The translations under genes and the position numbers were made by a program. Shown here in pieces: positions 19,280-64,000 of a stretch of 64,000 nt of DNA. Location of the stretch: the NCBI RefSeq assembly GCF_963506605.1, contig NC_083281.1:30876001-30940000 (forward strand). Direction: 5' to 3'. This DNA is from Zootoca vivipara. Its lineage: Eukaryota. Below the pieces are notes generated by a model. It searched no databases, had not been told where the DNA came from, and worked only from the letters and a program-made list of their open reading frames with translations. Position 1 is the stretch's first letter. The number at the start of each line of letters is the position of its first letter.

Positions 19280-19950
19280 TCACGCAGCTCAGCAAAGAGC
19301 AGACCCCGAGGCACGCTCCCATGACGCAGCTGGCCCCCGAAACACAACTCCGTCCGGCGCAGATCCCGACAAAGTTGCCTCCTCCGCTCGACCTCCACGG
19401 ACTACCTGCCGAAGCCGCTCGGGGTTCCTCGGCACGTTCCGACTCTTTCCCACCTCTTCGGCTCTTTCCGCCCACGCTCGGGAACGCCTCGTCGTAGCCG
19501 CGCCCCTTCCCTCCCTCCTGAGTCGGTGGGGCGGGGCTTGGCAGTCGCCGAGCGCACCTGAGACGGGCCAGACGTCGGGCAGCAGGAGGAGGAGCCTCGC
19601 AGTGGCGGCAGGTGCGTCGAAGCGCCGGGGTGGAAGGGAAAGAGGCTGTCGGCCTTTGGAGCAGCAGCGCTGCGCTACGTCGCGCACGGGGTGATTCTTC
19701 ACAATGCTCGGAATAGGGATCTGCCCAGCCCTGAGAGGAGCAGCTGACCCTACTCAGCTGGGGTGGTGACGTCATTGCTGTCGCCTTGTGGTCGAGGTGG
19801 CTGGATCCGTATGACGTCATCTTACAAGGTGTGCCGCTTGTCCCCCAGCCACGTGCAGCCCAACAGCCGACACCCGGCGAGGTCTTTTCCCTATTCCTTC
19901 TAGGGCTTACCCCTTGATTCGCGAAGTCCACGTTGACGAGGCTGCATCGA
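19280..19950. promoter_or_regulatory. CpG-island promoter of SERINC2 (possibly bidirectional) with GC box, two full CREs and an E-box
   Basis: High GC and CpG density. GGGGCGGGG at ~19528, TGACGTCA at 19767-19774 and 19812-19819, CACGTG at 19850-19855. Confidence 0.75.
19284..19322 (-). CDS. SERINC2: SERINC2 coding exon 1 (start codon)
   Basis: ATG at 19322; 39 nt encoding MGACLGVCSLLSC, followed by a GTGAGT donor. Matches the recalled SERINC2 N-terminus MGACLGACSLLSC and lies in a CpG island. Confidence 0.93.
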
Positions 19951-27943: not shown

Positions 27944-28095
27944 NNNNNNNNNNNNNNNNNNNNNNNNNNNNNNNNNNNNNNNNNNNNNNNNNNNNNNNNN
28001 NNNNNNNNNNNNNNNNNNNNNNNNNNNNNNNNNNNNNNNNNNNNNNNNNNNNNNNNNNNNNNNNNNNNNNNNNNNNNNNNNNNNNNNNNNNNNNN
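27944..28095. other. Assembly gap (152 N)
   Basis: Run of N. Confidence 1.
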
Positions 28096-33875: not shown

Positions 33876-34562
33876 TAGTTGGTCAAGGGAGCCATGGGCT
33901 CAGAAAGGTTGAAAACCTCTGAGCTAATGGAACGTGCTTAGTTTTGCCATGACCTGATGCATATGTGCCATCTCATGCCAAAGATTGTGGTTCAATGAAG
34001 GGCTTCAAATTTGCCCATTAACTTTGGGAGGAGGGTGCCCAATACCCACAAATATATTATCGTGGGTACCAAAGCACCCACGACCCCCCGGAGTTGGCTC
34101 CAGTGGCCTGCTGACTGTGGTAACACAGGGGTGAGCTTTTCCCTGGTGGCTCCAGTTTTGTGGAATGCCCTCCCTGCCAAAATACGAGCTGCGCCATCAG
34201 TGTTGGCATTCTGCCGGCTCCTCAAGACACACCTCTGGGCAAGCAGCCCCCTGAACTGGACTGAACTTGTGTTTTTATTGTTTTAACTGTTTCTTAATTT
34301 TTTTCAATCGTTATGCTTTTTAACTTTTTGCTTTATCATATATTTTGTTTATTAAAGATGTTTCAGTGTTGTTGTGTATTTTAATTATGGATCAGAGTTG
34401 TGAATGGCTTAGAAACCATTTTATCTTCTGCATAGGACTTGATTGAATATAACCTAAAAGCTCTAAGAACAATAAAATAAATTCAACGAACTCTGAACCA
34501 CCCACACAGACTCTCAAAACAGTTATATCATATATCGAATTGATCTTCCATAAATGACTGGG

Positions 34563-34925
34563 TTACACCTCAGGGGAAAATTCCCTAAAGAAAACTGTTT
34601 TCAGTCTGCGCCTGAACGTCATCACACTAGGCACCTGTTTGATTTCAGCTGGCAATTTATTCCAGAGAACTGGAGCTACAACACTAAAAGCCCAGTTTCT
34701 CGTGCAGGCTAAGCACACCTCTGGGGCATTTGTTACTCTCAGCAGTGCTTCATTTGAGGAGTGCAGCTGCTGGGAAGGGATATAGCAGGAAAGGACTTTA
34801 AATGCTAAAAGCAAAACCTTGAACTGTGCCTGCTAGCATCTTGGCAGCCAGATCAGCTCCTTCAGCAGAGGTGTAACACGGTATCAATGGTGTGCCTTAG
34901 TCAACAATCTGCTGCATTCTGCAAC
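34563..34925 (-). mobile_element. Degenerate L2 LINE fragment
   Basis: Remnant AFSVVAPVLWNKLP...FRRRLKT. Confidence 0.65.
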
Positions 34926-35510
34926 AGCTCTTTGTTGAAGGGTTTTATGCAGATAGTAAAGGCCCAACTATTAGGGATGCTGTAGCAAAAGTGTGGGGAA
35001 CCTTTGGCCATCCAGATGTTGCCGAACTGCAACTCCCATCATCCCTGGCCATTGGCCATGCTGGCTGGGCCTGATGGGACGTGCAGCTCAGGAACATCTG
35101 CAGGGCCGAAAGGTTCCCCTGTGGTAAGCAATTGCAACCCACATCCCGGGAAGTTAGCACTGCAGCTCTGCTGCCCCAGCAAGCTAGGAGATAAAGGACC
35201 CCTGGAGAGTTAAGTCCAGTCAAAGGAGACTATGGGGTTGTGTCACTCATCTCGCTTTCAGGCTGAGGGACCTGGCGTTTGTCCACAGACAGCTTTCCGG
35301 GTCATGTGGCCAGCATGACTAAACCATTTCTGGTGCAATGGACGGAAACCAGAGTGCACTGAAACACCATTTACCTTCCAGATAGACAAAGGGATTAGTT
35401 TCCCCATTAACAGGAGCAGATCACCAGAGCAAGGAAATGCTGGTGGTGCCGTTTAGATCTGCATGGCGGGGGATCTAGCTCACTTAAGCTTTTTCTTCTA
35501 TCCCATCAAG

Positions 35511-35647
35511 CAGGCATCGCCCAAACTTCGGCCCTCCAGATGTTTTGGCCTACAATTCCCATCATCCCTGACCACTGTTCCTATTAGCTAGGGATCATGG
35601 GAGTTGTAGGCCAAAACATCTGGAGGGCCGCAGTTTGGGGATGCCTG
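35511..35647. mobile_element. ~136-bp hAT-type MITE just upstream of the PKI acceptor
   Basis: TIRs CAGGCATC / GATGCCTG. Confidence 0.75.
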
Positions 35648-35715
35648 TCATAAAGGCATGCCAATAGGGGCCCTTGCCTAACTTGGAACTTCCTGTGTCT
35701 TGTTTCAGGGGAAGT

Positions 35716-35860
35716 ATGACTGAGGTGGAGCCTGTGTTAGATTTTGCATCATCTGGGCGCACTGGTCGAAGGAACGCGTTGCCGGACATTCTGGGCTCAC
35801 CGTCTGGCGTCAGTCCCACTGACTTGCCAATGAAACTGGCGGAAATGTCTCTAAACTCAG
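35716..35860 (+). CDS. cAMP-dependent protein kinase inhibitor (PKI family, PKIB-like) coding exon 1
   Basis: Acceptor TGTTTCAG|G at 35708, ATG at 35716 with A at -3, donor CAG|GTAGAT after 35860. Encodes MTEVEPVLDFASSGRTGRRNALPDILGSPSGVSPTDLPMKLAEMSLNS, containing the PKI pseudosubstrate F-x4-R-x2-RRNA-hydrophobic and NES LxxxLxxMxL. Confidence 0.92.
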
Positions 35861-36329
35861 GTAGATAGTGGCCTTATTCTCTTATGCTTCCCATGCCAGT
35901 GGTATCTTTGGCTAATGGATCTGCTCCTCACATTCTTCCTCTGTTATACTGGACTTGTTGGTTTGAACGACCCTAGTACACCCAAAACCTACTCAGTAAT
36001 GAAATCGCCGAACCTGCGACTTCTTGCATGCAAACCAAACGGCTTGTGCAAGGACATGAAAATAGCCTGCTGGATCAGGCCAGTGGCTTATCAAGTCCAG
36101 CTTCCTAATCTCACAGGGTCCAACCAGATGCCTGAAGGAAACCAGCAAGCAGAACATGAGCACAAGAGCCCTCTCCCCTCCCCTGGTTTCCAGCAGCTGT
36201 AACTCAAAAGCATTGAGGCCAACAACTGTGGAGGCAGGGTGTAAATAGCATGCGTAGTAGCTAATGCTAGTCCCCTCCTTCATGAATTTGTCTAATCCTA
36301 TTTCAAAGCCATCCAAGTTGGTGGTCATC

Positions 36330-36843
36330 TGTCAAGGCTTTGGGAAAGCTATTCCTCCCCTGGTTGCAGCAAGAGCAGAGAAGACAAACTGAATCCTTTT
36401 TAGTGAGTTTTATTCAATCCTAATAGTGAGAGACAAAATAACACAACAAGCCTTAACATGGCGTTGCTCCAAACTGGGCTCCTCCTCCCTCCTTCCTGTC
36501 AACAGCCCCTTCCCTTACAGTGGCCACTTGTGGTCAAATGCCTTTGAGTCCTTCGTTCCTGTGCTCCTAACGAACGTCATGTTCTGGGAGAAGGGGGATC
36601 AGAAATACTTTCCAGTGACAATGTGTCAGTTGGCTGCCCTGCCCCAGTCCTACCCCCCCTTCTTCTAACACTGCCTAACTTTTTGTTCGCCTATCTCTGA
36701 GTTGGGACTTCCCTCAGACTCCTCAAACTCCTGCTGTAAATCAAAGCTGCATTCCTCTTCTCCCTCAGAGTCAGAAGAAGGGGGCGGGTGATCTCCACCA
36801 TTCCTCCTCCGCTCTCTCACCCTCTTGAGTCCAATCCCTGACA
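36330..36843 (-). mobile_element. Solo LTR in the PKI intron
   Basis: TGTCA...TGACA termini and 5-bp TSD TCATC (36325-36329, 36844-36848). It splits an older CR1-related repeat. AATAAA on the - strand at ~36409. Confidence 0.7.
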
Positions 36844-37219
36844 TCATCATTGCCTCCTGGGAGAGCAAATTCCATAGTTTGACTATGTACAGTATGAAGT
36901 ACTTTCTTTTATTTGTCCTAAATCTTCCAGCAGCCTAAACCTAGTGTCCTAAACCTTACCCTCAAGCTGCAGCCTTATTCTCCACGGATATTAATTACAT
37001 CATTAAAAAACTATTTCCACTGTAGTAGATGGTGAGATGCATAACACAGGTTTTAGCAGGAGCCAAATTGCAGCAGAATAGAAACAGCGCAGGCCGAGAT
37101 GGAACCTTGTTCCCTCCTTACATCCTTCATTGAAATGCCCTTTTTTTCCCTCTGGCTGCTCCTTCACTGATCTTGTCTCTTTGCTTGACCCTCTCCCCAC
37201 CTCCCCTCCCCAATCCCAG

Positions 37220-37302
37220 ACAGGTCTCAAGAAATGCAGTCGCCAGCCACAGAGGTGCCCCCAGCAGTACCTCAAAGCCCAGAGCTGAAAGATACCTCTT
37301 AA
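37220..37302 (+). CDS. PKI-family gene coding exon 2 (terminal)
   Basis: Long pyrimidine tract then CCCAG|AC. The phase-1 join gives DRSQEMQSPATEVPPAVPQSPELKDTS-TAA, for a total of 75 aa, the typical PKI size. The tail is not conserved among PKIs, so the call rests on splice signal and length. Confidence 0.72.
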
Positions 37303-38994
37303 CCCCTCCTCATGGAGGCATCGGAAGCCACATAGGACATGGAAGGACTTCCCAGTATCAGAAGAAGTTTGCCTGTGTGTGTTTGTGTGGGGTGACCCAG
37401 CAAGGCTGTCTTACATCTCTCAGCATGGACTGACAGAGGAAGATGAGGGATTCCACAGCCATCTGTTTTACAAAGATGAGGGCAGAACCTTGAAGGGACC
37501 ATTTTCTTCTGTGGGACTTGAGGGGAGCGAAAGAAGAGGAAAGGGAGGGTCTGTTGAAAGGCTTACAGAGCCTAGGAAGCTGCCTTCCACAGACTATTGG
37601 TTCTAGCCAGCTCAGTATTGTCAACACTGATTGGCAGCAGCTGTCCAGGGTTTTTGGCTGAGCATCTTTCTCGGCCCTATCTGGAGATGCTGAGGGTTAA
37701 ACCTGTGACCTTTGACAGGCAAAGCATGTGCTCTGAGCCCCTTCCCTAACTGTACACTTGCTATCCTAGAGGATCCTGAAGGTTATTAAAGGATCCAAGG
37801 TGTTCTTTCCTCCTTCTTCAGAGAGTGCATTCTTCACTGTGATGTTTGGGGAAAATGACTTGTTTATTTGGGATTTGGGATTTGGTGTTGTCGTTTTTTC
37901 ACCAACAGATCCAGTATTCTTTTTCACACAAAAAATGCTAGGGGCAAGACGTGGGATCAGCTTATCCTCCCTCCTGGTTGATCCCCCATCAAGAGTGTAA
38001 TTATGTCCTGTATACCGGTACTTAGGGAATTTCTGTGGTTTGAGGAACAGAATTACCCCAACCTCTCAAAAAGGAAAGAAATGTAATGGCATTACCAAAG
38101 TCATCACCAACCTGGTCTTCAAGAACATGAATTTGGAATTCAAAACATTAAGATGGCAAAAAGTCTTGTTATATCTTAGAAACTACTTGGTTCACAGGCA
38201 TATCGGGGGTTGTCTGTGTAGAATTTGATGTTGAGCTCATTCTCAAAAAATATCAGCTTTCTTTAGAGGGAAGGACTCAAGTTTCAAGTCCTCATGGTTG
38301 TGAAGCAATGCTCACATTATAGAAATGACAGAAGGGTCTCACCATCTTTCCTCGGGTGACAAGCACACACACACACCAGCTACTATATTTTAGAAGGTCA
38401 CAGGATGGCATTCTGCGAAAATTAGGAGGTGATTGTCAGGTTGTGTGATTTTTGTTAGGCGTTCCCTCTCCCCTTTCCTCCATCCTTTGAGTGCTGGTGC
38501 AAAGACAGGCCTAAAAATGTCCAGGCAACATCTGAGAAACTATTACAATTGTAGGAGGGAGGGTCAGAAAGATTTCCAGTAGTCAAACAGATAGATATTT
38601 AAAACACAAGAGTCCATATAGTCCTGATTATGGCACAGCTACTATCCCAGTACAGTAATTGGCAGGAAATTACCCTGCCTCCCATTGCATCAGAACAATG
38701 GCTTAAGCACAAGGGAGTAGAAACATAGACAAAGGATAGAATGGAAATATAGAATGGAAATATAGACAAAGGCTGCCCCCCCCAAAAGACCTTTTCCTGT
38801 TCCCAAAATCCACCACATTGAGCTTTCATGCTCACACACCACTGTTAAGAACATTGGACTGGTTTCCTCCAGGGCAAAGATTATTCAAAAATTCAGAGAT
38901 GGAATGGACATGTTGTAGAAAAGAGGGTTGCCCCAGTTTATAGAGTTATAAAGCACTCGTGTTTAGTGAGGATCTGTTCGTGCTAATACTGCTC

Positions 38995-39000
38995 ATTAAA
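38995..39000 (+). terminator. Candidate poly(A) signal of the PKI gene
   Basis: ATTAAA followed ~20 nt later by a GU/U-rich tract (TGTGTGGTTTTACTTTCTGGTTTTT). Confidence 0.35.
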
Positions 39001-39300
39001 CTTCCACCATTCCAACAACTGTGTGGTTTTACTTTCTGGTTTTTATTCCAAAACATAACTCAAATCCCCTTTTTTTGAGCTATTCTGCCCTGTGCATTAG
39101 TACCCTAGAGAGGCAAGTCTACACCCAGCATCTGACAGCTCCAGGGTGGGTGACATGGTAAATGCCTTAGAAGTGTCAGAGATAGGTTCCAATGGCCCTG
39201 GAAAGGGGTGTGGGGCTGGAGAGGGAGGCATGGCTTTCCCTTAGGATCCTCAGTATCAAGCTCCCCAATCCTACTGGAACCCTCCCTCTACATCTCCAGC

Positions 39301-39390
39301 CATAGCTGCCAAGTTCGCCCTTTTTTTAAGGGAAATTCCCTTATGCTGAATAGGCTTCCTCGTGAGAAAAGGGAAAACTTGGCAGCTATG
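39301..39390. mobile_element. 90-bp hAT-type MITE
   Basis: Perfect 15-bp TIR CATAGCTGCCAAGTT; TSD TCTCCAGC. Confidence 0.8.
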
Positions 39391-39728
39391 TCTCCAGCAA
39401 ACCATCTACCTGTATCATCCAGCCATGAGAGAAGCACGAATGATCAACCATCAAAGCCTACGGCCCAAAATGAACTACGGCTTACTAGTTAGAAATGCAA
39501 AAATGCCTTTGCATTTATTTAGTTAAGGATTGGGGTACCTCAGCCCCAGGGGTCAAACTAGCCTTCCAGGCCTCTTGGGATTCTCCCGAGGCCACCTGCC
39601 CAGGCACAGCCTTTAAGGGAGGATGGAGAGTGATGTGGCCATATTGCCAAGGCAAAGCAGTGTTCCCGTGTTTCTCAGACTTGGCCATCAACCCTGCAGG
39701 AATAGTTCTACAGAGCCATAGTGTCATT

Positions 39729-39850
39729 CAGGCATCCCCAAACTTTGGCCCTCCAGATGTTTTGGGCTACAATTCCCATCTTCCCCGACCACTGGTCCTG
39801 TTAGTTAGGGATCATGGGAGTTTGGGGGGGCTGCAGTTTGGGGGTGCCTG
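39729..39850. mobile_element. hAT-type MITE (internally deleted copy)
   Basis: TIRs; TSD GTGTCATT/GTGTAATT. Confidence 0.72.
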
Positions 39851-40821
39851 GTGTAATTCATGGGCCAGGAGTCAGCTTCACCTGCTGAACAACAGCCTGA
39901 AGGGAAAGAAGGCTGGGGCCAGCTGGTTCTCATCAGTGCCTTCTCCTCCACATCCTTGAAGGCTGATCAGCTGCAGGTGGAGTCACTCCTTCTTCTCCCC
40001 CCACCTTTCAGGCTGCTGTTCGGCAGGTGAAGCTGACTCCTGGCCCATGACACATACTGATTCCCATGGAGACAAAGGGAATGGTTGTAACTCAGTGGTG
40101 GGGCATCTGTTTCACGTGGTCCCTGGCCTAATCCCTGCCACCAACAGATAGTACTGGGAGAGACTGCTGTCTGAAATTAGATTATACCAAACTGGGTGTA
40201 CCGTATGAGAGGCTTGTCTCAGAATACAGTAAAGCATTTTACTAGGTTTCCATTGGTTTCAACGGATGAGCTGCAGTACCTTTTCTGGACACTACGAGGG
40301 TGGCGCTGCAACACAGGACATTGAAAATTAGTATCCGCTTTCAACTGCAGCTACTTTCAACATATGGCTCCCACTCACCAAACCAGTAATAGTCTCCAGG
40401 TGTAGTTGGACTCCAACTTCCATCAGCTCCAGACAGCATGATAAACATAACCAGCAGCCTCTCCTACCGCCCACAGCCAAGGTTTGGGCCAACTCCAAAC
40501 CACCTTGGTCTGCAAGATGTCAAGCAATGTCCAAGAGGACAATGTGCTGAGCAAGGAAATGGTTTGGGCAGCAAGAGGCTATAGTACAAATGCCATTTGA
40601 CTTCCTTCCAGTGCCGCCCTCCCCCCATTACCTTGTAAGCAGCCACTTCAACTGCGGTTCAAGCTGGCCGTGTTGTGTAATCATTTTGTTCAAGTGGACA
40701 GGGATGTTAAAAAGTAACTATGCCAGAAGAGGCAGAAGAAAGCATTTGGAAGGAGAGCTCTGCACAAACCGGAATTTGCAGAGTGAGCGCCGCTATGAAA
40801 TACAATGGCATCTGAACCTGT

Positions 40822-47049: not shown

Positions 47050-48800
47050 CTGCCAGGGACCGCGTCTGTGTGGGGGCTGGGATGGCCGAGAGGCTACACC
47101 GGTTGAATTCCAGCCTGTCTTGTCGAGACGCTACACCAGTTAAATCCCAGCCTGTTTTGCAGCACCACCACCAGAAGCGGCTCCACCCGGCAGGCGTTCC
47201 TAAAGACTTCGAAAGCCCTCGATAGCTCGTTCGGGCTGCTCCAATCTCCCGGCTTGTCACTTACAAGGGGTGGGGGTGCGGGGTATGACGGACAGCCCAT
47301 CACTTGTGATCTTTCCCACCCATGTGATCAGAAGCAAGAGCTATTTAAGGGAGACCGGCGGCCGCGCCTGGAAAATATATACATAAATATAAAGAGCGCC
47401 AAGCCACCAAGCGTGCTGCGTGAAAGCCTCTCTCCTCGCTGCACAAACATTCCCGACAAGGCTCGCTATGGCTGAAGCTTTCGCAGGCGTCTGGAACCTG
47501 GTCGACAGCTGCAATTTCGACGATTACATGAAAGCTATCGGTAAAAGCAGGAATACTATTTTTTCCTTCCGTTTTTTTTTTGGGGGGGGGTGCGTGGGTG
47601 GAGATTGCCTAGGAGGAGAACGCACGACCTTGCAGGCTGTTGGCACTGCAACTCCGAGAAGGCCTGCGGGGTTTTTCCTTCCACCATCAGCCACTCGCCC
47701 GCCCGGGAGGCTGAAATGTTATCGGTGCATCTTGGAATGCGCTCGGCTTGGACAGCTCGCTCGGTGCGGTGCCGTTTGGTAACGCCGAGCGCCGGCGAGC
47801 TGGGGCGTTTTCTCCTCCGCGGCCATCTGGAAATCCCTTGGAGAAGTTGAGCCGCCAGCCACGTGGGCGGAGGGCAGGCATTTCATTCAAACCTTGCCGT
47901 TTTATAGTACTGGAGGAGCTCCGCGGCGGATTAGGCTGCCGGGAGAATCCTTCCCTCTTAATCCCTTCTGGGTGTAAATGCGTTTAATTCGGATCCACGC
48001 CGTGGCTGCAGGTGATGCATAGGGTAGCTTGGGTATATTGCATTCTGCTGCCCCCAGCCCCACCCCCGGAGGTGCAGAAAGTAGGGTCCCCGCGTCACAG
48101 CATAATCCTAGGTCTACTGGGGGGGGCACCCCCTATTGAATTCAATGGGGTTTACGCCCAGGTAAGGGTAGCTAGTGGTGGTTAGGGATTGCAGCCATTC
48201 ATTTGTTGTAGCAAAACGCAGCAAAGAGCCTTGGGGCGCCTTGAGAGCGAACGCGTGTATTAGATGGCATGGGCTTTCCTGGATTTGCAGGAGAGGAAAA
48301 TGCCACGTGTGGAAAGGGTTGGGGACGCGCGTCTGCCGCTGCAGCGAGTAAATCTGCACGCTTCCCGGCGCCTTTCAACAAGCCAAGAAAAAGGATCTAG
48401 CTGCCCAATCGTGACTCTCGAGTATGATGTATTGTTTTATCTCTCGTCGTGCATGGTGGTTAGCCTAGAACTAAGCTTAATGGCGCTTGCTTCCGAGTAG
48501 GCGCACAAAAGGTCTCGCGGTTAAGAGGCGTCCGGACGCACCGGGCGAGGTCAGAACGGTGAACCAAGTTTGGGGAAGAGGGCGGGGAAAGCTAGCCCGG
48601 GGCAGCTGAGCTTTGGGAGCATCTTCCATTCGCGCTAGGCCACGCCGCCTCCGCCCAGGGCGCTCCTCTGTCTGTCTGCGGGGCGATTGGTTTACGCTGG
48701 TTGGAATGGGGCCAAACCTCGCCCGCTTGGCTCCTGCAGCGCCTTGGCAGAGCTGTCCGCCCGAGATTTATTCCTCTTTTCTTACTCTCTTAGGCCACAA
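47050..48800 (+). promoter_or_regulatory. FABP3 promoter / CpG island with TATA box
   Basis: CpG-rich across exon 1 and the start of intron 1. TATAAA at 47388-47393; AT-rich MEF2/CArG-like CTATTTAAGG at 47341-47350. Confidence 0.65.
47468..47540 (+). CDS. FABP3: FABP3 (heart-type fatty acid-binding protein) exon 1
   Basis: 73 nt encoding MAEAFAGVWNLVDSCNFDDYMKAI(G), GT donor; canonical FABP exon size. Confidence 0.95.
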
Positions 48801-49216
48801 GGTGGAAAAGATGGAATTTATACTTATCTTAGCCTGTCCTATGCAAAGCAAATGACTCACTGACTTACTCGGAAGTAAGTCCCATCATAAGTAAGGCTTG
48901 CTCCGAAGTAAATGCAGGTATAATCCCTGCATAAATGATGGAGAGTTGATCAGGAGACATAATTTCTTTTGTTTGTTTCTCTAGTTTCATGTTCATTACG
49001 ATGATCATTTTTTCCTTACATTTACATGGCAACTTTCCTCCCGGGAGCTCAAGGTGTGGTAAATGGTTCCCTTTTCCTTCCCATTTTATCCTCACAACAA
49101 CCCTGTGAAGTAGGCTGTGCTGCTGTGAGTGACCGGCCCCAGGTCACTCTGTGAACTTAATGGCCGAGTGGGGATTCGAACCCTGGTCTCCCAGGTCTTA
49201 GCCCAATATTCTAGCC

Positions 49217-49353
49217 CAGACACCCCCAAACTGTGGCCCTCCAGATGTTTTGGCCTACAACTCCCATGATCCCTAGCTAAGAGGATCCAGTGGTCAGGGA
49301 AGATGGGAATTGTAGTCCCAAACATCTGGAGGGCCACAGTTTGGGGATGCCTG
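49217..49353. mobile_element. ~136-bp hAT-type MITE nested in a MIR-like SINE
   Basis: TSD TTCTAGCC; the flanks (CCTCACAACAACCCTGTGAAGTAGG...GGATTCGAACCC / ACTACACCACACTGGCT) are continuous SINE sequence. Confidence 0.78.
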
Positions 49354-49906
49354 TTCTAGCCACTACACCACACTGGCTCTCTTAATATGTTCCGCCTTTT
49401 ATTCTCTCGCTTTTATGTGTGGGTCCTGAGCAGCCCTATGCATCCCCTCTCATTGTATTTATCTGGTAATCCACGGCCCCTATTCTTTATGGGAAGGGCA
49501 TGCCTCATTTGTGCTAGCAGCTACCATTGTCATTAGTTAGGGGTCAGAGCCCTCCTTAGACTCTCCAGGGCTTTGTAATGAATATGTACCTACCGGTAAG
49601 TACATGAGCATTTGCACTAAAGCACCATGCAGTGCTCAGCCTGCCATTTTGCACAAAGCTTCAGGTATACCTGGAGTTGTTTATCATGACTGAAGGACTC
49701 TTCCTCCTCCCCCTTCAGATTTCTCCCTCTGTCTGCAAACTTGGGTAGTGAGTGCTGCCGGACTGGTACCAAAAAACCACTTAAGACACAAGCAGGAGGT
49801 ATCAGCATATATGGAGAGAATCCTGAAGGGGAATCCTCCCCCTCCCCACAGACACACAAAAGGCTCCGTGAGTACTGAGCATGCTCAGTAGCCATGGAAT
49901 GTAGGA

Positions 49907-50545
49907 AAAAATCGGAGTGGAAAAACCAGAGCTTTGGGGCATTGTATATAATGAATTAAAAAAAGATATTCAAATTCCCATTCACAAAAAGACCAGAGGC
50001 ATAATCCTATTAGGGATTATGTCGACTGAAATCAAGAAAGAAGTAAGACCATTTTTTATGTATGCAACATCTGCTGCCAGGATTCTGGTCGCAATGAATT
50101 GGAAGAGTGAAATTACACCTACAAAGTCAGAATGGCAGGTAAAAATGACAGAATACATCCAACTGGCAATAATGACAGGGAGAGTTGGAGGTGCTCGATG
50201 CAGAAGGTGGATAAAGAATGGATAGTATTTAAAGAATATTTGAAAATCTATTATAATGGCAAAAACCTCCTGGCAGAACTTAAATTATTTTTGTAGTGTA
50301 TAGACAGTAAACTAAAGAATATTTCTCTGAAGGAAATTAAGGAAAGAAAGTATAATAATATGATAGTGTAAATGAGACTTAGTTTTTTTGAGAACAACCA
50401 GAAGTTTATTTTACCTTACTTTCATTCTTTATTTTCCTTGTATTTTTCTTTTTGTTGTATATTGTGTTTGTGCATAAATTTTAGCATGGCAAATTGTTGC
50501 ATAAATATGTGTTGAATGTTTAATAAATATTCTTTTTATTTAAAA
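49907..50545 (+). mobile_element. 5'-truncated L1-type LINE in FABP3 intron 1
   Basis: ORF2 C-terminal remnant (YATSAARILVAMNWKSEITPTKSEWQVKM), AT-rich 3' UTR, AATAAA and A-tail; TSD AATGTAGGA (49898-49906, 50546-50554). Confidence 0.75.
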
Positions 50546-53474
50546 AATGTAGGATGACTGCTCAAAAAGAGAGAAGGGGAAATGGGAGGAGAGTGAAATT
50601 ATCTGCTTAGAGAGAATATTGGGTGGCTGGAACCTTGGGACAAGAACACTTCTATTAGGAGGGGGAATATGCTGCAACACTTTGTTGCAGGACCCACTTC
50701 TATTACTCCTTTAAACTCCAAAAACAAACATCTTTCAGAATAATGGGATATGAGGCTATGGCAAGGTTAAAGAATACAGCAGGTGAAATAGACTCCTCAA
50801 CAGAGCTATGGCATGAAGGGGCTCAGGTGGTGTTCTGTAGTTTGATGACTGGGGTGTTTGTGCCTTTTTCAGCTGAAAAATGTTAGGAGGCTGTGATGCT
50901 CTGTGGAATCTTGTGTGCTTGCTGGAACTGGGAAATATTGTTGGGAGATTGCCTAAGAGTGGCAAATCAGTACAGAACAGGTGGGGCCTAATTTTGAGTA
51001 GCATGATATGCTGATTAAAATTTTAAAATATAAAAAATTTGGAAGAAATTACAGATAAAGGCAAAGTACCTTTTGACCCTGTATACTCTTTGGCCAGGAA
51101 ATTGGAAGATGAGATCAGGTTCACATGATGCCATACATTTAAAACACTATGCTGCCACTTTAAACAGTTGTGGCTTCCCTCAAAGAATCCTGGGAGCTGT
51201 AGTTTAAGGGTGCTGAGAGTTGTTAGGCAATGATGACTATTCCCCTCACAGAGCCATATTTTTCAGAGTTGTCTGGGAAGAGGGATTGACTGTTAAACCA
51301 CTTGGAGAATTGTAGCTCTGGGAGGAGAATGTGGGTCACCGAGCAACTCTCAGAACCCTTAACAAAAACCCCAGGATTCTCTGAGAGAAGCCATGAGTGT
51401 TACAAGTCCTATAACAGTGTTTTAAATGTATGGTGTGAATGTGGCCAAGTTTCTACCTTAAATAGAAACTGGGCAGAAGCCTGCCTGCCTGCTTTCTGTT
51501 GTATCTCTCAATAAGAAGTTAGAGACATGCTTATTTTCCGTGTGCGAGAGAGAGGGGTGGTGGTGGAATATTCCAGGGAAGGTCAGTTCCCATGGTGCTT
51601 ATCTTCCTTCTTGGAATACTAGCATACCTTATTGCACTCTGAGCAAGATTATTTTCCTCCTCCAAGGACACTCACATTCCTGAAGGCCCCAGTAGACATT
51701 GTGACATGTTTGGAAGAACTAAGGGTGTTTATTTAACTGGCATTAGCAATCCAGGATATCAGCAAATGCTTTCAACAGTGTCTGCTAACTGGAATCTTTT
51801 TTAACTGGAGACCCCAGCAGTTGGAGTTTTCTACAAGAAAAGCAGTGTGTTCTCCATCCCTGAGCTTCTGACCCTTCTGTTAATCATAGGAACCTACAAC
51901 ATAATCTTGTAATGGGTCACACCATTGGCCTATCTTGCTCAGTAGTCTCTATATTTAGGGGTGGTGAAACCCAGGACCGGGAGCCAAATCCTTCTGTACA
52001 AAGATAAAATCTGTATTTGTTGCTTTGCGCGCTTTTGCCTCTGGCCCTATCCACAATGTTGTGCTGTCCTTGGAAGACTGCCGAGAAGAGGATGTTGAAT
52101 TGTGAAATTGGAAGGGACCACAAGGGTTCATCTAGTCCAGCCCCATGCAATGCTGGAATCTTTTGCCCTACATGGGTCTCGAATCCACAATTCTGCAGAC
52201 TGAGCTTGAGCTGGAATGTTTCCCAGCCCTTGCTCTGCATTGACTAGCAGTGGCTCTCCAGGATATCAGACAAGTTGGGCATACTTGGCTATACCTGAGG
52301 ATGATGGGGACATCAAACCTGGTACCTTCTGCATCCAAATCAGATGCTCCATCACTGAGCTTACAATCCTTTCCCCAATCACAGAGGATGTGGAAGAGAT
52401 CTCTGTTTTAAAAGCAAAACTGATCCGGGGAGTCGGTTCTCATCTTTGGGAGATGTGGAGGTGAGGCCTACCACCCACCCCATCTTCAAAGTCACCCTCT
52501 TAAAATTGTATTGTATCTATTAGGCCATGTTTTCTTCAAGGGGCTCCCCATTTTAGCCTCCCAGGACCACTGCGAGGTGTGCAAGGCTTGGTGAGTGCCA
52601 CTGGCCCAAGGTCATGCAGTGAGCCTTAAGGCAGAACAGGGATTTGAACCTGGGTCTGCTCCAGTCGTATTCTGACACGCTATACACAACACAACACACT
52701 AGTTACTGATCAGAGGGGGGGAATGTAAGGATTGCTGGTCATAGGGTGCAATGCATATGGAAGACTGGGCTCTCTGGTGGGAGCACAACAAAGCCATTCC
52801 TTTCCATTGCAGTTGCACAAATCCAATCAGATTAGCAGCTAAATGAGGAGAGGTCCACCCCAAAGGAATGCAAATGGTAAGAGTCTTGCCACACTGCTAA
52901 ATCCTGCCTGGAGAGTTCTCATTTGCAGCTTATCATATACAAACATGTGGGTCTCTTAGGAGTGCTCTCCACTACATGGCTGAATGCCAGAACGAACACT
53001 CCCTGCAAGGACTGGTGATGGAGGCCTGATTTCTCTATCTCAGTAAGTCAAGGACTCCCTTGCTCCACCTTCAGTCCAACTGATTTAATTTTGATGAATA
53101 AGCCTTTGTTCTTTTTGGTAGTGTGGCAGGGTGTTGGGTTATTGTGTTCTGTTGTGTGTGTGTGTTTAACCAAGCAGTTTTGCGAGCAGCTCTCTCTCGA
53201 AGGTATGGGGGAAGCTGTTGCTGAACTACAACTCCCATCAACCCTAGTGAGCATAGCTAACGGCCAGCAATGATGGGAGTTGTGGTTCAGCAACATCCGG
53301 AAGGTCAAAGATTCCCACACCTCCACTTTATTTTTAATCCTTCATTAGCTTTCTTCTATTTTAACAAATCTGCTTTTCATACCAGCATCCCATCAACACT
53401 GTGATTATTATGGCACTGACTTCTAAGCTTTTAGGCTGCTAATCCCCCCCATTTAATCTCTCCTTTTCCTGCAG

Positions 53475-53647
53475 GCGTGGGCTTTGCCACAAGGCAGATG
53501 GCAAACCTGACCAAACCCACCACCATTATTGAGGTTGACGGCAACAAGATCACTCTCAAGACCCAGAGCACTTTCAAGAATACGGAGATCAAATTCACGA
53601 TGGGAGAAGAATTTGATGAGACGACCGCAGATGACAGACATGTCAAG
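53475..53647 (+). CDS. FABP3: FABP3 exon 2
   Basis: 173 nt encoding [58 protein letters not shown]; KPTTIIE is FABP3-like. Confidence 0.95.
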
Positions 53648-56223
53648 GTAGAGTTCTGGCTGTCAAGATTGTGATTGCAACCCTTGCTAGGTCCCATCAG
53701 GAGCTACAAAAGGGTTAGATATGAATATAGAAGATGTTTTATAGCCGATCAGACTATTTAGCCCATGACTGTCTAGTTTGACTGGCCATGTTGTCAGCTG
53801 CTAGCAGTCCAGGTTGGTCTATTTAGGGCAAATGGGGCTCTACCACACCATCCTGGGTCTGGCCTCAGCCAGCTTTCACCTGCTTGCCTTCTTACTTGCA
53901 TCCAGTTCAAAAGGGGTAGCCCTGTCTGCTTGCTTGCTTCCTGCTCCTTAGTCCCATAGTTGCCCTTGTAAAACTCAGCAGGAGATGGGGCAAAACCAGA
54001 ATTAATTGATTCTGCTTGTCGTTGACTCTGCCTTCCACCCTACCATTCCAAATGGACACCAGCCACCACTGCCTGCTGCCTGATCCTTGTCACTCGAGAT
54101 GCCAGGACTGAACCAGATCAGTGGAGATTAAGTCTCACACTGGCCACGATGCCTATGTCCTGCCTCCACTTGGTTTGGAATCACAAGTGGGGAGAATTTC
54201 TGTTGTGCTGCTGTCCTGCTTGCAGGCTTTCTGAAACCTTTGGCCTGATCTGGTAGGGCTTTCCTTCTGTTCTTAACTTGGGGAGAAATGCTGCAGAAAC
54301 AAAAAGTGATGAGGTGGGCCTGGGAGAGAGAATGCAGAAGGTCAGGAAATGGGAACATTTGGCCCTCCGCTTGTTGCTGAACTACAGCTTTTATCAGCCC
54401 CACCCAGCATGACCAAAAGCCAGGAATAATGGAAGTTGCAGTTCAGCAACCTCTGGAAGACCAAAGGTTCCCTACACTTGGAGTAGGTGGCAGCTTGTGA
54501 AGACTCTGCTTTATGGTCCATACAGAAAGGGCTTTGTTCGGGAGTAGCCCAGGGTACCTGAGCCCTTGGTCATTTGTGGTGCCACCCCCCAAGCTCTCCT
54601 ACTCACCCAGTCTCTTAACTTGCCTAGAAGTCTTCTCTGCATTCATTCAAATTTGTGCCATGGGCATGTGGCCAGAGTCCTTTAGGTACCTAGTCACACC
54701 CCTGTTATTGCATCTGACCAGACCAGAGCTTACCTATTTTTCTATAAGCATTGGGTTTTTCTTTAAGTGTTAGCAGTGCTTTCTCTTTTTTAGGGGATAC
54801 TCAAGAGTACACAGTACTGGCACCTCTTTTTGTTTTTAAAAAGTGTGGCATTTGCTGAAACAACTTCAGTAAAAAAAAAGTACTGAGTGTTAGGTTATTC
54901 CGGTCTCGGAGCAGAGTTAGATTTGATAACAATTTGGAACAAGTAGAACCTGTAACAAAAGCTGGGCAGGTGCATGCTTACTCTCGAGCAAGCCATGCTG
55001 AACTCAGCAAGTCTTATTTTTGAGTAAACCAGCAGAGGTTTGCACTGATTAACAACCTTAAGTTTGTATACTGGATTCCTATTCATCGACGTGGTTTTCT
55101 CTTACCTGTTATCAGATCCTGAACAAACCAATTCCGCTGTTGTGACGTTGATATTTATTGTCTGTCAAAAGAAGCTGTGCTACTGGTTTCTACCCTCAAA
55201 TGACACAGCCGGCAGTTCTGAAGCCTTGCCGGTGGTGGGTGGGGTTTAAAATAAAAAAGTAGCTTAGAGCGTATTAAAACCATTCTTCTTTTCAATAATC
55301 ACATAGCCATGACTCACTGCAGGATCTCTTACTGGTGAGAGCAGCTTGTGATGATGTCACAACATATTTTAAAAATTAGGATTGTGAGCCGAAACTGATT
55401 TTAATTGAGGAGTTGAGTTTGTTTTTTTAGATCCATTTTTGCCCTGGTATGTTAATGTGATGGGAAAGGAGGGTATTTTGTTCTGAGTGGTGAAAGTAAA
55501 TTCTTCCACTGCTTTTCCTTATTCTCAAAAAGGTGCCTGTTTTGAGGGCTTGCTGGTGTGCAGTTTCAGTTGCCCTTGCTTAAAGGGAAAAGCCAAATGA
55601 CTTAATTGACTAAAAATATTGTTTTAAGTGGTGTACAGACACTTGTCAAGCAAAACGTAACGAGTGGGAGCAATGGAAATATCTCATTTGCATTCCACAG
55701 GAAGCAAGCATGTGTGAATTACTGGCAAGCTGCATGTTTGACCTTCGAAGCAAATGATTTTGGCTGGCTGGCAGCCAGAGGACAAGATGTTAAAACAACA
55801 TGTATGGCCTGCGAGAGGTTCTGCTTTAGAGCTTCACGGGAGTTGCAGGGTGCTCTGCACAGATGACCTGAGCCTGAAGGTTAACAATAGGATAGGCTTA
55901 CAGCAGCTGGCAGCCTCACTGGCTCCCATGTGGGGCATATATAAGGGTAGGGGATATGACTCAGTTCACATTTAAAGGGGAACTTGCCTAACAAACTTTT
56001 TGAAACAATATAAGAACTGAAAGGCCCAGTCATCCTTCAAAATGCACACTTATCTGAATTTTGCACTGTGGTTCTTTGGCTAACTAATGGGTACAAAGAT
56101 GTGGAGCATTGTTAGCAGACCCCTGTTCTTCCACACAGCTACACTTCCCAAGGTTCCCTGGGGGAAATGATTAAACCACTCTAGAAATTGCAGCTCTGGG
56201 ACAGGAAAAGGGGCTTCCTAACA

Positions 56224-56597
56224 CAGTGTTTCTCAACCTTTTTTGGGCCACGGCACACTTGTTCCGTGAAAAAAATCACGAGGCACACCACCATTAAAAA
56301 AGTTTAAAAAATTAACTCTGTGCCGCCCTATATTATAATTATGACTGTAAGAAACACTTGCCAAATATTGCTTTCCGGCGGGTCAGTGGTGTGTATTGGC
56401 GGCCGCCAGGCTCGTTTGCACTGAACTTTGGGAAAGAGGAGGAGAAATATTGCTTTCTGGCGGGGCAGTGTAGCTTATTGGCGGCCGCCAGGCACGTAAC
56501 AATGTAAATCGCCCTTCTCGTCGCCACATGTTGCGGCACACCAGCCAGCGTCTCGCGGCACACTAGTGTGCCGCGGAACAGTGGATGAGAAACGCTG
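56224..56597. mobile_element. hAT-type non-autonomous element
   Basis: TIRs CAGTGTTTCTCA / TGAGAAACGCTG; perfect TSD TCCTAACA. Confidence 0.8.
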
Positions 56598-56835
56598 TCC
56601 TAACAACTCTCAGCATTTTTTTGGAGGAAGCCATGGCTGTTTAAAGTGGGATGATACTGCCTTAAATCAATAGTGCTGATGGGGCCTTGCTTGCACCCCA
56701 TCCAAGGGATGAAACGGTCTGTCCGCCTTCCTCCTCTGTAGTCTGTGTTGCGCTTGTGGAACTCAGAATTATTTTCTGTTACGAACCACAATTCTGCAGC
56801 TCTCTAACGAGCTTGATTTGATTTCTTTCTTTCAG

Positions 56836-56937
56836 TCCCTTGTGACACTAGATGGAGGGAAGCTCCTTCATGTGCAGAAATGGGATGAGAAGGAGACCTC
56901 GCTAGTCCGAGAACTGAAGGACGGAAAGTTGATTTTG
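56836..56937 (+). CDS. FABP3: FABP3 exon 3
   Basis: 102 nt encoding [34 protein letters not shown], bounded by TTCAG| and |GTAAGA. Confidence 0.95.
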
Positions 56938-57663
56938 GTAAGACAAAAGTACGCTGCTCTTTACCTGTGGCCTACATGGGCAAGTTAAAAATTTGAAGAG
57001 AAAACTGCAAGGGAAGGAAATCACTCCTGGAAACTATTTAACCTGCCTCCAACCCCACCCCACCCCTGGTCACATGAAAATGTGCCTGGGGAAAAACGAG
57101 CAAGTAACTCTTTACTTTTGGCTGGCTCTGCAATTTAATGGTTGGCTGGCTATATCAATTAGAAACATTTTGATCAACTGCAAGAGGTGCCCACTTAATC
57201 AGGCTGCAGAGTGCTTGTTTTTACTTTTTCAAAATTGTGCTTTAGACTAGTACATACAATCCTTGTCGGTGGAGGCACTGCCCCACCCTGGGAACCCTCG
57301 TGCCAATTTTGGCAATGATATCTCAAGAGCCAAACCTGTGCAAAAAAAAAGGTCAAACTGAAGTCCCACCCTGGTCCGCCATCTTGATTCAAGATGGCAC
57401 ACGCCATCCAAATGGTGACAAAGTCTTCTGCCCTCCAGCTTGGAAACCCTTGTGCCATGTTTGGCAATGATATTTCAAGAGGCAGCCAGATCTATGGAGG
57501 ATAGACAGTCAAACCTCTTTCCAAAATATGCAGTAGGTATTAACCCACCCTTACGGTGTTGTAAGTAATGCCCTAAGACTAAGTCATTATACCATCTATA
57601 ACAGGCCTCTTGGGGAGTCACAGGGTTTCTGGGCTAAGACTTGCTTACCTTTTCTTCTTTCAG

Positions 57664-57717
57664 ACTCTGACGATGGGCAACGTGATCTGCACCCGTACCT
57701 ATCAAAAAGCGGAATAA
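57664..57717 (+). CDS. FABP3: FABP3 exon 4 (stop)
   Basis: 54 nt encoding TLTMGNVICTRTYQKAE-TAA. Exons sum to 402 nt (133 aa), and the ligand-binding R-x-Y is retained. Confidence 0.95.
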   Translation, partial: TLTMGNVICTRTYQKAE

Positions 57718-63867: not shown

Positions 63868-64000
63868 TCAGTCCTTGTGCTTCTTCTTATGATGCTTCTT
63901 CTTTTTTCGCTTCTGGGATGCACTAGCTTTTTCAGTCCGTTTTGATTTCTTCCTTGATGGCTGAACATCATCAGCATCTGACTCACCACTGTCAGAATCC
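63868..64000 (-). CDS. ZCCHC17: ZCCHC17 (pNO40) last coding exon, partial
   Basis: The minus strand reads ...DSDSGESDADDVQPSRKKSKRTEKASASQKRKKKKHHKKKHKD-TGA, resembling the recalled human C-terminus (...SDSDSSDSESD...KKKKHKKKHKE). It is convergent with FABP3, as in human. Confidence 0.85.
   Translation of the reverse strand, partial: DSDSGESDADDVQPSRKKSKRTEKASASQKRKKKKHHKKKHKD

Follow-up and report, generated by a model that had tools for sequence, protein, structure and literature searches.

A two-exon PKI gene in the Zootoca window

The subject of this study is a gene of the PKA inhibitor (PKI) family at positions 35709-37302 of what we call the window, namely the whole stretch of 64,000 nucleotides of the lizard Zootoca vivipara that was analysed (contig NC_083281.1, positions 30,876,001 to 30,940,000, forward strand). 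We use "T4" (type 4) as the label for the protein encoded by this gene and for its orthologues. The T4 gene is real: it is intact, under strong constraint, and belongs to the PKI family while standing outside the PKIA and PKIB groups. Its two exons are, in our judgment, very probably the coding part of a functional fourth vertebrate PKI paralogue: one that pre-dates the split between sharks and bony vertebrates, that most likely arose as a block copy in the two rounds of early vertebrate genome duplication (2R), and that was then vertically inherited, to be lost no later than in the common ancestor of extant mammals.

The ATG exon (35709-35860, + strand) follows a splice acceptor AG at 35707-35708, itself preceded by a pyrimidine tract, and consists of a 7-base leader, the initiator ATG at 35716-35718 with the remainder of codons 1-48, and the first base (G) of codon 49, beyond which lies the donor GT at 35861-35862. 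The ensuing intron (35861-37219, + strand) measures 1359 bases, is of the GT..AG type in phase 1, and closes with a second acceptor AG at 37218-37219. The tail exon (37220-37302, + strand) then supplies bases 2-3 of codon 49, codons 50-75 and the stop TAA at 37300-37302. Both exons have canonical AG/GT sites, and G joined to AC across the junction specifies D. Translation of 35716-35859 yields the same 48 residues as were given in the original prediction, which had been made from the DNA letters, and translation of 37222-37299 yields RSQEMQSPATEVPPAVPQSPELKDTS; taken together, the coding exons specify the 75-aa protein exactly as it was then written.

The product of the ATG exon alone scores 67.4 bits against the Pfam PKI profile PF02827 (E 1.4e-18; cut-off 25), a family match far beyond chance. 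The two exons were used as separate search queries, and their joined product corresponds to the database protein P0001, i.e., XP_034975564.1, "PKIB-like [Zootoca vivipara]", with which it is identical over all 75 aa; hence, the gene model is already in the databases. The splice sites, the translation, the profile match and this identity together bear out the earlier claim of an intact two-exon PKI gene. The ATG exon also carries the predicted functional elements of the protein, a PKA pseudosubstrate (F10, R15 and R18-R19-N20-A21-L22) and a nuclear export signal (L37-M39-L41-M44-L46). On the 3' side, the untranslated region (UTR) has a minimum extent of 37303-37734 (+ strand), as judged from a contig of 185 bases (run X13) and a handful of RNA-seq reads at 37550-37748; no AATAAA occurs on the + strand downstream of the PKI stop before 41409. 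On the 5' side, an assembly gap of 152 N (27944-28095) falls within the long first intron of the gene.

The junction between the two exons is also used in other species. On short contigs of the ENA/Logan collections, intron-free open reading frames (ORFs) run straight through it in birds, sharks, frogs and teleosts (e.g., P0022, bird, 500 bases, 11 member sequences; P0041, shark or ray, 14 contigs; P0045 and P0071, frogs; P0095, teleost). Since these collections call uninterrupted ORFs, the ones that cross the junction should represent spliced mRNAs. In ducks (P0124, P0397; Logan contigs), the T4 intron is apparently just 78 bases long and in frame, and the contigs that retain it encode a 101-aa form in which 26 additional residues separate the export signal from the tail.

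T4 as a lineage apart from PKIA and PKIB

Zootoca vivipara has a true PKIB of its own, P0383 (XP_034965090.1), which lies on a 120.5-Mb contig and belongs to the 90% cluster of the Podarcis PKIB. The window protein is 51% identical to it, as against 72-76% to shark T4 and 84-85% to axolotl and bird T4; to snake PKIA it is 42% identical. A separate PKIB in the same genome, more distant from the window protein than are its counterparts in sharks, establishes that the latter is not PKIB, in keeping with what had been proposed for this locus. Lacerta and Podarcis, like Zootoca, carry both a T4 and a PKIB, and in six species the two genes are on different large contigs, namely Podarcis lilfordi (T4 on a contig of 85.0 Mb, PKIB on one of 119.7 Mb), Varanus, Phrynosoma, Sphaerodactylus, Stegostoma and Hymenochirus. 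With a bird PKIB as the query, PKIB was recovered from the T4-bearing Varanus, Phrynosoma, Anolis, Sphaerodactylus, Salvator, tuatara, crocodile, tortoise and quail, and likewise from both Xenopus species, Hymenochirus, lungfish, bichir, several teleosts and the zebra shark. A corresponding search with PKIA showed that many of the species with T4 and PKIB possess it as well, as a third, distinct protein. All three are present together in sharks, ray-finned fishes (bichir and teleosts), lungfish, frogs, tuatara and lizards, including geckos.

Our main phylogenetic tree comprised 56 sequences over 77 columns, with 18 gnathostome T4 proteins, 14 PKIAs and the Zootoca PKIB among them. In it, the 18 T4 proteins form a clade (100/99) that is present in all 200 bootstrap trees, and PKIA forms another (100/100). 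The window protein is nested within the tetrapod T4 clade (98/89), whereas the Zootoca PKIB P0383 is placed among the squamate PKIBs. Within T4, the branching runs from cartilaginous fishes through ray-finned fishes and lungfish with amphibians to amniotes; it follows the species tree and thus speaks for vertical descent. A second tree of 69 sequences unites T4 with two long-branched cyclostome proteins in a clade (95/83) that is again apart from PKIB and PKIA. The PKI phylogeny that had been suggested as a check accordingly places the window protein in a clade of its own reaching back to the sharks, one that spans cartilaginous and bony vertebrates as expected of a 2R ohnologue. We also considered the monotreme proteins named PKIB (P0225, echidna; P0263, platypus) as surviving mammalian T4 proteins, a suspicion raised by their Pro-rich tail, and rejected them: they have an 11-residue N-terminus and fall among the amniote PKIBs. 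They are unusually divergent and Ala/Pro/Gly-rich, their end branches measuring 0.63-0.75 where the median is 0.085.

In taxonomic terms, T4 is found in sharks, rays, ray-finned fishes, lungfish, amphibians, tuatara, turtles, crocodilians, birds and lizards. There are no mammals among the best 120 matches to the ATG exon (exon A), where sharks and teleosts score 78-84 bits, and the published sheep and pig gene lists of the SERINC2/FABP3/ZCCHC17 interval include no PKI gene (PMC11161479, PMC12586332). The earlier suggestion that the gene was retained in lizards and lost in mammals is, therefore, sustained by these lists as far as mammals are concerned and has to be broadened in its other half: T4 is no lizard specialty, being kept from sharks to birds. 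The orthologues are annotated as 'PKIB-like' or 'PKIA-like', as had been guessed, and several are named 'beta'. A 2020 review recognizes three endogenous PKI isoforms (PMC7723848); we found no paper describing a fourth, and a protein cluster search returned generic PKI clusters only.

The sequence conservation of T4 is pronounced. Across 31 T4 sequences, 31 columns are invariant, including F10, R15, R18, R19, N20, A21, L22, P23, D24, L37 and L41, with the export-signal positions 39 and 44 always L or M and position 46 L or I in these proteins. In the tail, Q-[ST]-P is kept, as is SPELKD-x-S from sharks to birds. On a matched seven-species panel, the mean pairwise identity amounts to 74% for T4 and to 64% each for PKIB and PKIA. 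The most conserved of the three paralogues compared is, then, the copy that mammals appear to lack.

Several results weigh against a functional fourth paralogue. First, in the 56-sequence tree PKIB is an unresolved grade rather than a single clade over the 77 columns, and the two cyclostome proteins shift between trees, grouping with PKIB here and with T4 in the 69-sequence tree. Second, when the window protein is forced to group with all PKIBs, the log-likelihood drops by 23.8 and the approximately unbiased (AU) test gives p 0.067, which is no formal rejection. Third, T4 is set apart from PKIG by position and names only. Fourth, mammals appear to lack T4 going by match lists and published gene lists, not by a genome search. 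Fifth, the lizard RNA, which comprised three raw runs (~6% of each read, tissue unknown) and one contig set over 34400-40300, yielded in the three runs no reads across the junction 35860/37220, with a depth of 0 in exon A past an upstream repeat and of ~0 in the tail exon.

The second of these points bears on the possibility that the window gene is the lizard PKIB orthologue, mislabelled or relocated. The NCBI name 'beta-like' and the name 'beta' of several orthologues would fit with this, as would the fact that PKIB is the nearest paralogue of T4 (51-57% identity, versus 42% to PKIA). Against this stand the squamate-grouped PKIB that Zootoca has besides, the closer relationship of the window protein to shark T4 than to that PKIB, the robust T4 clade, the different large contigs of the two genes in six species, and a flanking FABP gene that by score is of the heart type, not of the brain type (FABP7) found next to PKIB. 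We hence consider this explanation highly improbable. A recent PKIB duplicate restricted to squamates or sauropsids might have been entertained as long as the gene had been met in a lizard only. It can practically be dismissed, given that sharks, rays, bichir, teleosts, lungfish and amphibians all have the T4 N-terminus MTEVEPVLDF, which is shorter by one residue than that of other PKIs, along with the SPELKD-x-S tail, and that the branching within T4 matches the species tree, which contradicts a recent duplication.

The fifth point raises the question of whether the Zootoca gene might be a silent or decaying relic that is intact by chance. Spliced RNA-seq reads across 35860/37220 had been put forward as a check on the gene, and none emerged from the runs sampled; the nil coverage of the exons and the absence of a canonical AATAAA for 4 kb downstream are what such a relic would lead one to expect. 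Conversely, the open frame and canonical splice sites argue otherwise, as do the difference of merely 2/75 residues between the T4 proteins of Zootoca and Podarcis lilfordi, the 95% identity to Varanus T4, and the retention in Zootoca of all 31 family-invariant residues. The reads themselves represent ~6% of each run, and a few of them along with one contig do fall in the 3' UTR. The lizard reads are thus no support for expression, yet no sign of silence either, and we judge a relic to be very unlikely. As regards the repeat, a hairpin at 35520-35647 (arms of 50 bases, 94% complementary) ends 60 bases 5' of the ATG exon, and related copies lie at 35027-35086 and 39737-39826. The large read depth at 35000-35650 and 39300-39830 corresponds to these interspersed hairpin repeats, to which the reads fit partly; the thousands of partly fitting reads on the hairpin mimic expression in the bin of the ATG exon.

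The genomic neighborhood and the origin of T4

The left end of the window is occupied by the 5' half of a SERINC gene on the - strand (530-8300), the rest of which lies outside the window. Four pieces matching the Pfam Serinc profile (PF03348) are colinear on this strand: profile positions 1-61, 58-111, 109-139 and 123-192 are matched, respectively, at 8040-8300, 6966-7205, 2245-2448 and 530-817. Compared with human SERINC3, a SERINC piece reaches only 48.8 bits over 67 residues, a distant match, and we designate the gene SERINC2 by context. To the right of the PKI gene lies a FABP3-like gene of four exons on the + strand (47468-57717; exons at ~47468-47542, 53477-53650, 56836-56937 and 57664-57717). 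In comparisons with solved structures, heart FABP outscores brain FABP on all three of the longer exons, the totals being 159.4 bits for the human heart protein (80.3+48.3+30.8) and 149.0 bits for the human brain protein (78.4+45.2+25.4). At the right edge, the last coding exon of a ZCCHC17-like gene (63871-63999, - strand) is Lys/Ser-rich and ends in ..SRKKSKRTEKASASQKRKKKKHHKKKHKD before the stop, with a C-terminus that reads ..KRKKKKHHKKKHKD-stop; it is probably the C-terminus of ZCCHC17, going by its likeness to that of the mammalian protein. Thus, of the flanking genes named in the original prediction, a SERINC gene and a FABP3-like gene are supported by profile and structure scores, while the assignment to SERINC2 depends on context and that to ZCCHC17 on the likeness to the mammalian C-terminus.

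Two gene models from other vertebrates offer hints in the same direction. In the sterlet (Acipenser ruthenus), a model named heart FABP (P0165) fuses T4 exon A to FABP exons 3-4, which implies a FABP neighbor on the strand of T4 there too; in the catfish Bagarius yarrelli, a model (P0167) fuses T4 exon A to stathmin. Both fused models are annotation errors, yet they provide indirect hints of gene order.

The position of the gene is also of consequence for the third of the points listed above, namely the relationship to PKIG. If T4 were the true orthologue of a mammalian PKIG that had evolved fast and been relocated, there would be only three PKI lineages. The trees, which cover T4, PKIA and PKIB, leave room for this in that the word 'fourth' goes by position, by names and by the three-way separation of these proteins, and no 'gamma' name occurs in the three match lists, of 120 rows each, obtained with T4, PKIB and PKIA as queries. 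In human gene maps, PKIG adjoins SERINC3 and ADA and has no FABP gene nearby; the window gene, unlike it, adjoins FABP3-like and ZCCHC17-like genes. Further, annotation pipelines have never named T4 'gamma', and chicken has, besides its T4 (P0388, a separate 'uncharacterized protein'), an expressed gene annotated as PKIG (PMC4227886). The chances of this alternative accordingly appear slim to us, and a T4 distinct from PKIG remains our preferred reading.

Where then did T4 come from? The order and strands of the trio in the window are SERINC (-), PKI (+) and FABP (+), and the human SERINC1-PKIB-FABP7 arrangement is the same. The chicken SERINC1-PKIB-FABP7 trio is likewise mirrored, the order at that locus being NKAIN2, FABP7, PKIB, SERINC1, HSF2 (PMC7597553). 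This correspondence in order and strands suggests that whole blocks, and not single genes, were copied. Hence, we propose that the early vertebrate genome duplications generated four copies of a SERINC-PKI-FABP block, one of which would have included T4; that T4 would have originated before sharks and bony vertebrates diverged; and that it would have disappeared either in the common ancestor of today's mammals or earlier. An old paralogue could also have come from a duplication outside 2R, local or segmental: a single locus was seen, and the placement of the cyclostome proteins, which bears on the timing relative to 2R, is unstable. In view of the mirrored trio we regard that alternative as improbable. 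The reading of T4 that we favor is that of a fourth ohnologue, which all jawed vertebrates sampled, mammals excepted, have retained. As such it would occupy the vacant PKI place in the SERINC2-FABP3 block, which would then exemplify a block present in four paralogous copies, with a single loss confined to one lineage.

Upstream of the coding exons, a candidate first PKI exon lies at 19811-19881 (+ strand), with an undefined start, a donor AG|GT at 19881/19882 and no supporting reads. It was brought to light by the Podarcis lilfordi model P0381, which has 23 extra N-terminal residues: the first 12 of these (MTSSCKVCRLAP) match 19811-19846 on the + strand (MTSSYKVCRLSP), and the frame is preserved when 19881 is spliced to 35709 (..R-G-S-M, the residues found in P0381). 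Given that splice, the PKI start would share its frame with an ATG further upstream, at 19811, which would add 26 residues; however, beyond the 12 residues the extension differs between the two lacertids, which makes a 5' UTR exon containing an upstream ATG the probable interpretation. In the same CpG-rich stretch between the SERINC and PKI genes, there are two perfect palindromes of the cAMP response element (CRE), TGACGTCA, at 19767-19774 and 19812-19819, neither with an assigned strand. They are the only two such sites in 64 kb (0.31 expected), are 45 bases apart, and the second overlaps the upstream ATG. From this motif count, the pair could possibly be a shared promoter element of the SERINC and PKI genes.

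One may carry this further into a scenario that we offer as a rather doubtful speculation. T4 would be the most constrained and ancestral-like PKI, with a CpG-island promoter placed head-to-head with that of SERINC2 and furnished with the two CREs, such that cAMP, acting through CREB, would induce the very protein that terminates nuclear PKA activity. The disappearance of such a feedback inhibitor from the mammalian stem would have altered the way in which nuclear PKA signalling is terminated, with PKIA, PKIB or PKIG stepping in.

Predicted function and relationship to known PKIs

The features of T4 are those of the PKI family at large: a profile match, a pseudosubstrate, an export signal, a length of ~75 aa and a largely disordered chain. 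HMMER matches residues 1-60 to the full-length PKI-alpha of two exportin complexes; for residues 8-26, the match is the PKI peptide in complex with the catalytic subunit of PKA (1cmk_I). In one of the exportin complexes (3wyg_D), L37, M39, L41, M44 and L46 align with L-x-L-x-L-x2-L-x-I of PKI-alpha, which would make them the equivalent export signal. The determinants claimed at the outset (F10, R15, R18, R19, A21 and L22 for the pseudosubstrate, together with the five export-signal residues) are hence correctly placed relative to PKI-alpha in solved complexes. An AlphaFold model built with the T4 alignment is mostly disordered, its sole confident helix (34-51) lying over the export signal; with a mean pLDDT (predicted local distance difference test) of 63.6, it is weak evidence.

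We advance the following mechanism on the strength of these correspondences. The pseudosubstrate R18-R19-N20-A21-L22, aided by F10 and R15, would bind the free PKA catalytic subunit; with Ala in the phospho-acceptor position, T4 would inhibit the kinase and not serve as its substrate. Exportin-1 would then be recruited by the helix around L37-x-M39-x-L41-x2-M44-x-L46, leading to nuclear export of the kinase in the manner of PKI-alpha. From its invariant residues, T4 would thus be both a pseudosubstrate inhibitor of the free PKA catalytic subunit and its nuclear exporter.

These findings have some bearing on how the PKI family is viewed. The PKI set of jawed vertebrates would be one of four, to which mammals are the exception, and T4 is present in the main non-mammalian models, i.e., chicken, Xenopus and zebrafish-type teleosts. 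As it has gone unrecognised there, it may buffer the effect of knocking out or knocking down pkia, pkib or pkig in these models, and PKI results from mammals may not carry over to T4-bearing animals. T4 is no new kind of molecule and its gene models exist already; the advance lies in its recognition and naming.

Among the known PKIs, PKIB is the one that T4 resembles most. Both belong to the same Pfam family, have nearly the same length (77 aa in PKIB, 75 in T4) and share the layout of an ATG exon and a tail exon, the same export-signal spacing and, in non-mammals, the pseudosubstrate GRRNALPDILGS; both have a SERINC gene upstream on the opposite strand and a FABP gene downstream on the same strand. 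The differences are equally consistent. The T4 N-terminus, MTEVEPVLDF, is one residue shorter than the MTDVEPVVTDF of PKIB; T4 has GVSPxDLP[LM]K where PKIB has GAGTSDLPHK; and the T4 tail is Pro-rich and ends in SPELKDTS, whereas that of PKIB is acidic, Gly-rich and ends in EGKSMDS. T4 is flanked by a FABP3-like gene and PKIB by FABP7, and T4 is the more conserved of the two. Nor does T4 group with PKIB in the trees, represent the only PKIB-like gene of its genome or occupy the position between SERINC1 and FABP7. With PKIA, T4 shares an identical spacing of F, R and the RRNA pseudosubstrate and all five hydrophobic positions of the export signal, as seen in 1cmk_I and 3wyg_D. It differs in its overall sequence (42% identity), in having L-P after the Ala where PKIA has [IL]-H, and in being without the T-[ST]-Y-A motif that precedes the Phe of PKIA, which forms its own clade (100/100). 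PKIG, which belongs to the same family by annotation, is expected to share the PKI pseudosubstrate and export signal.

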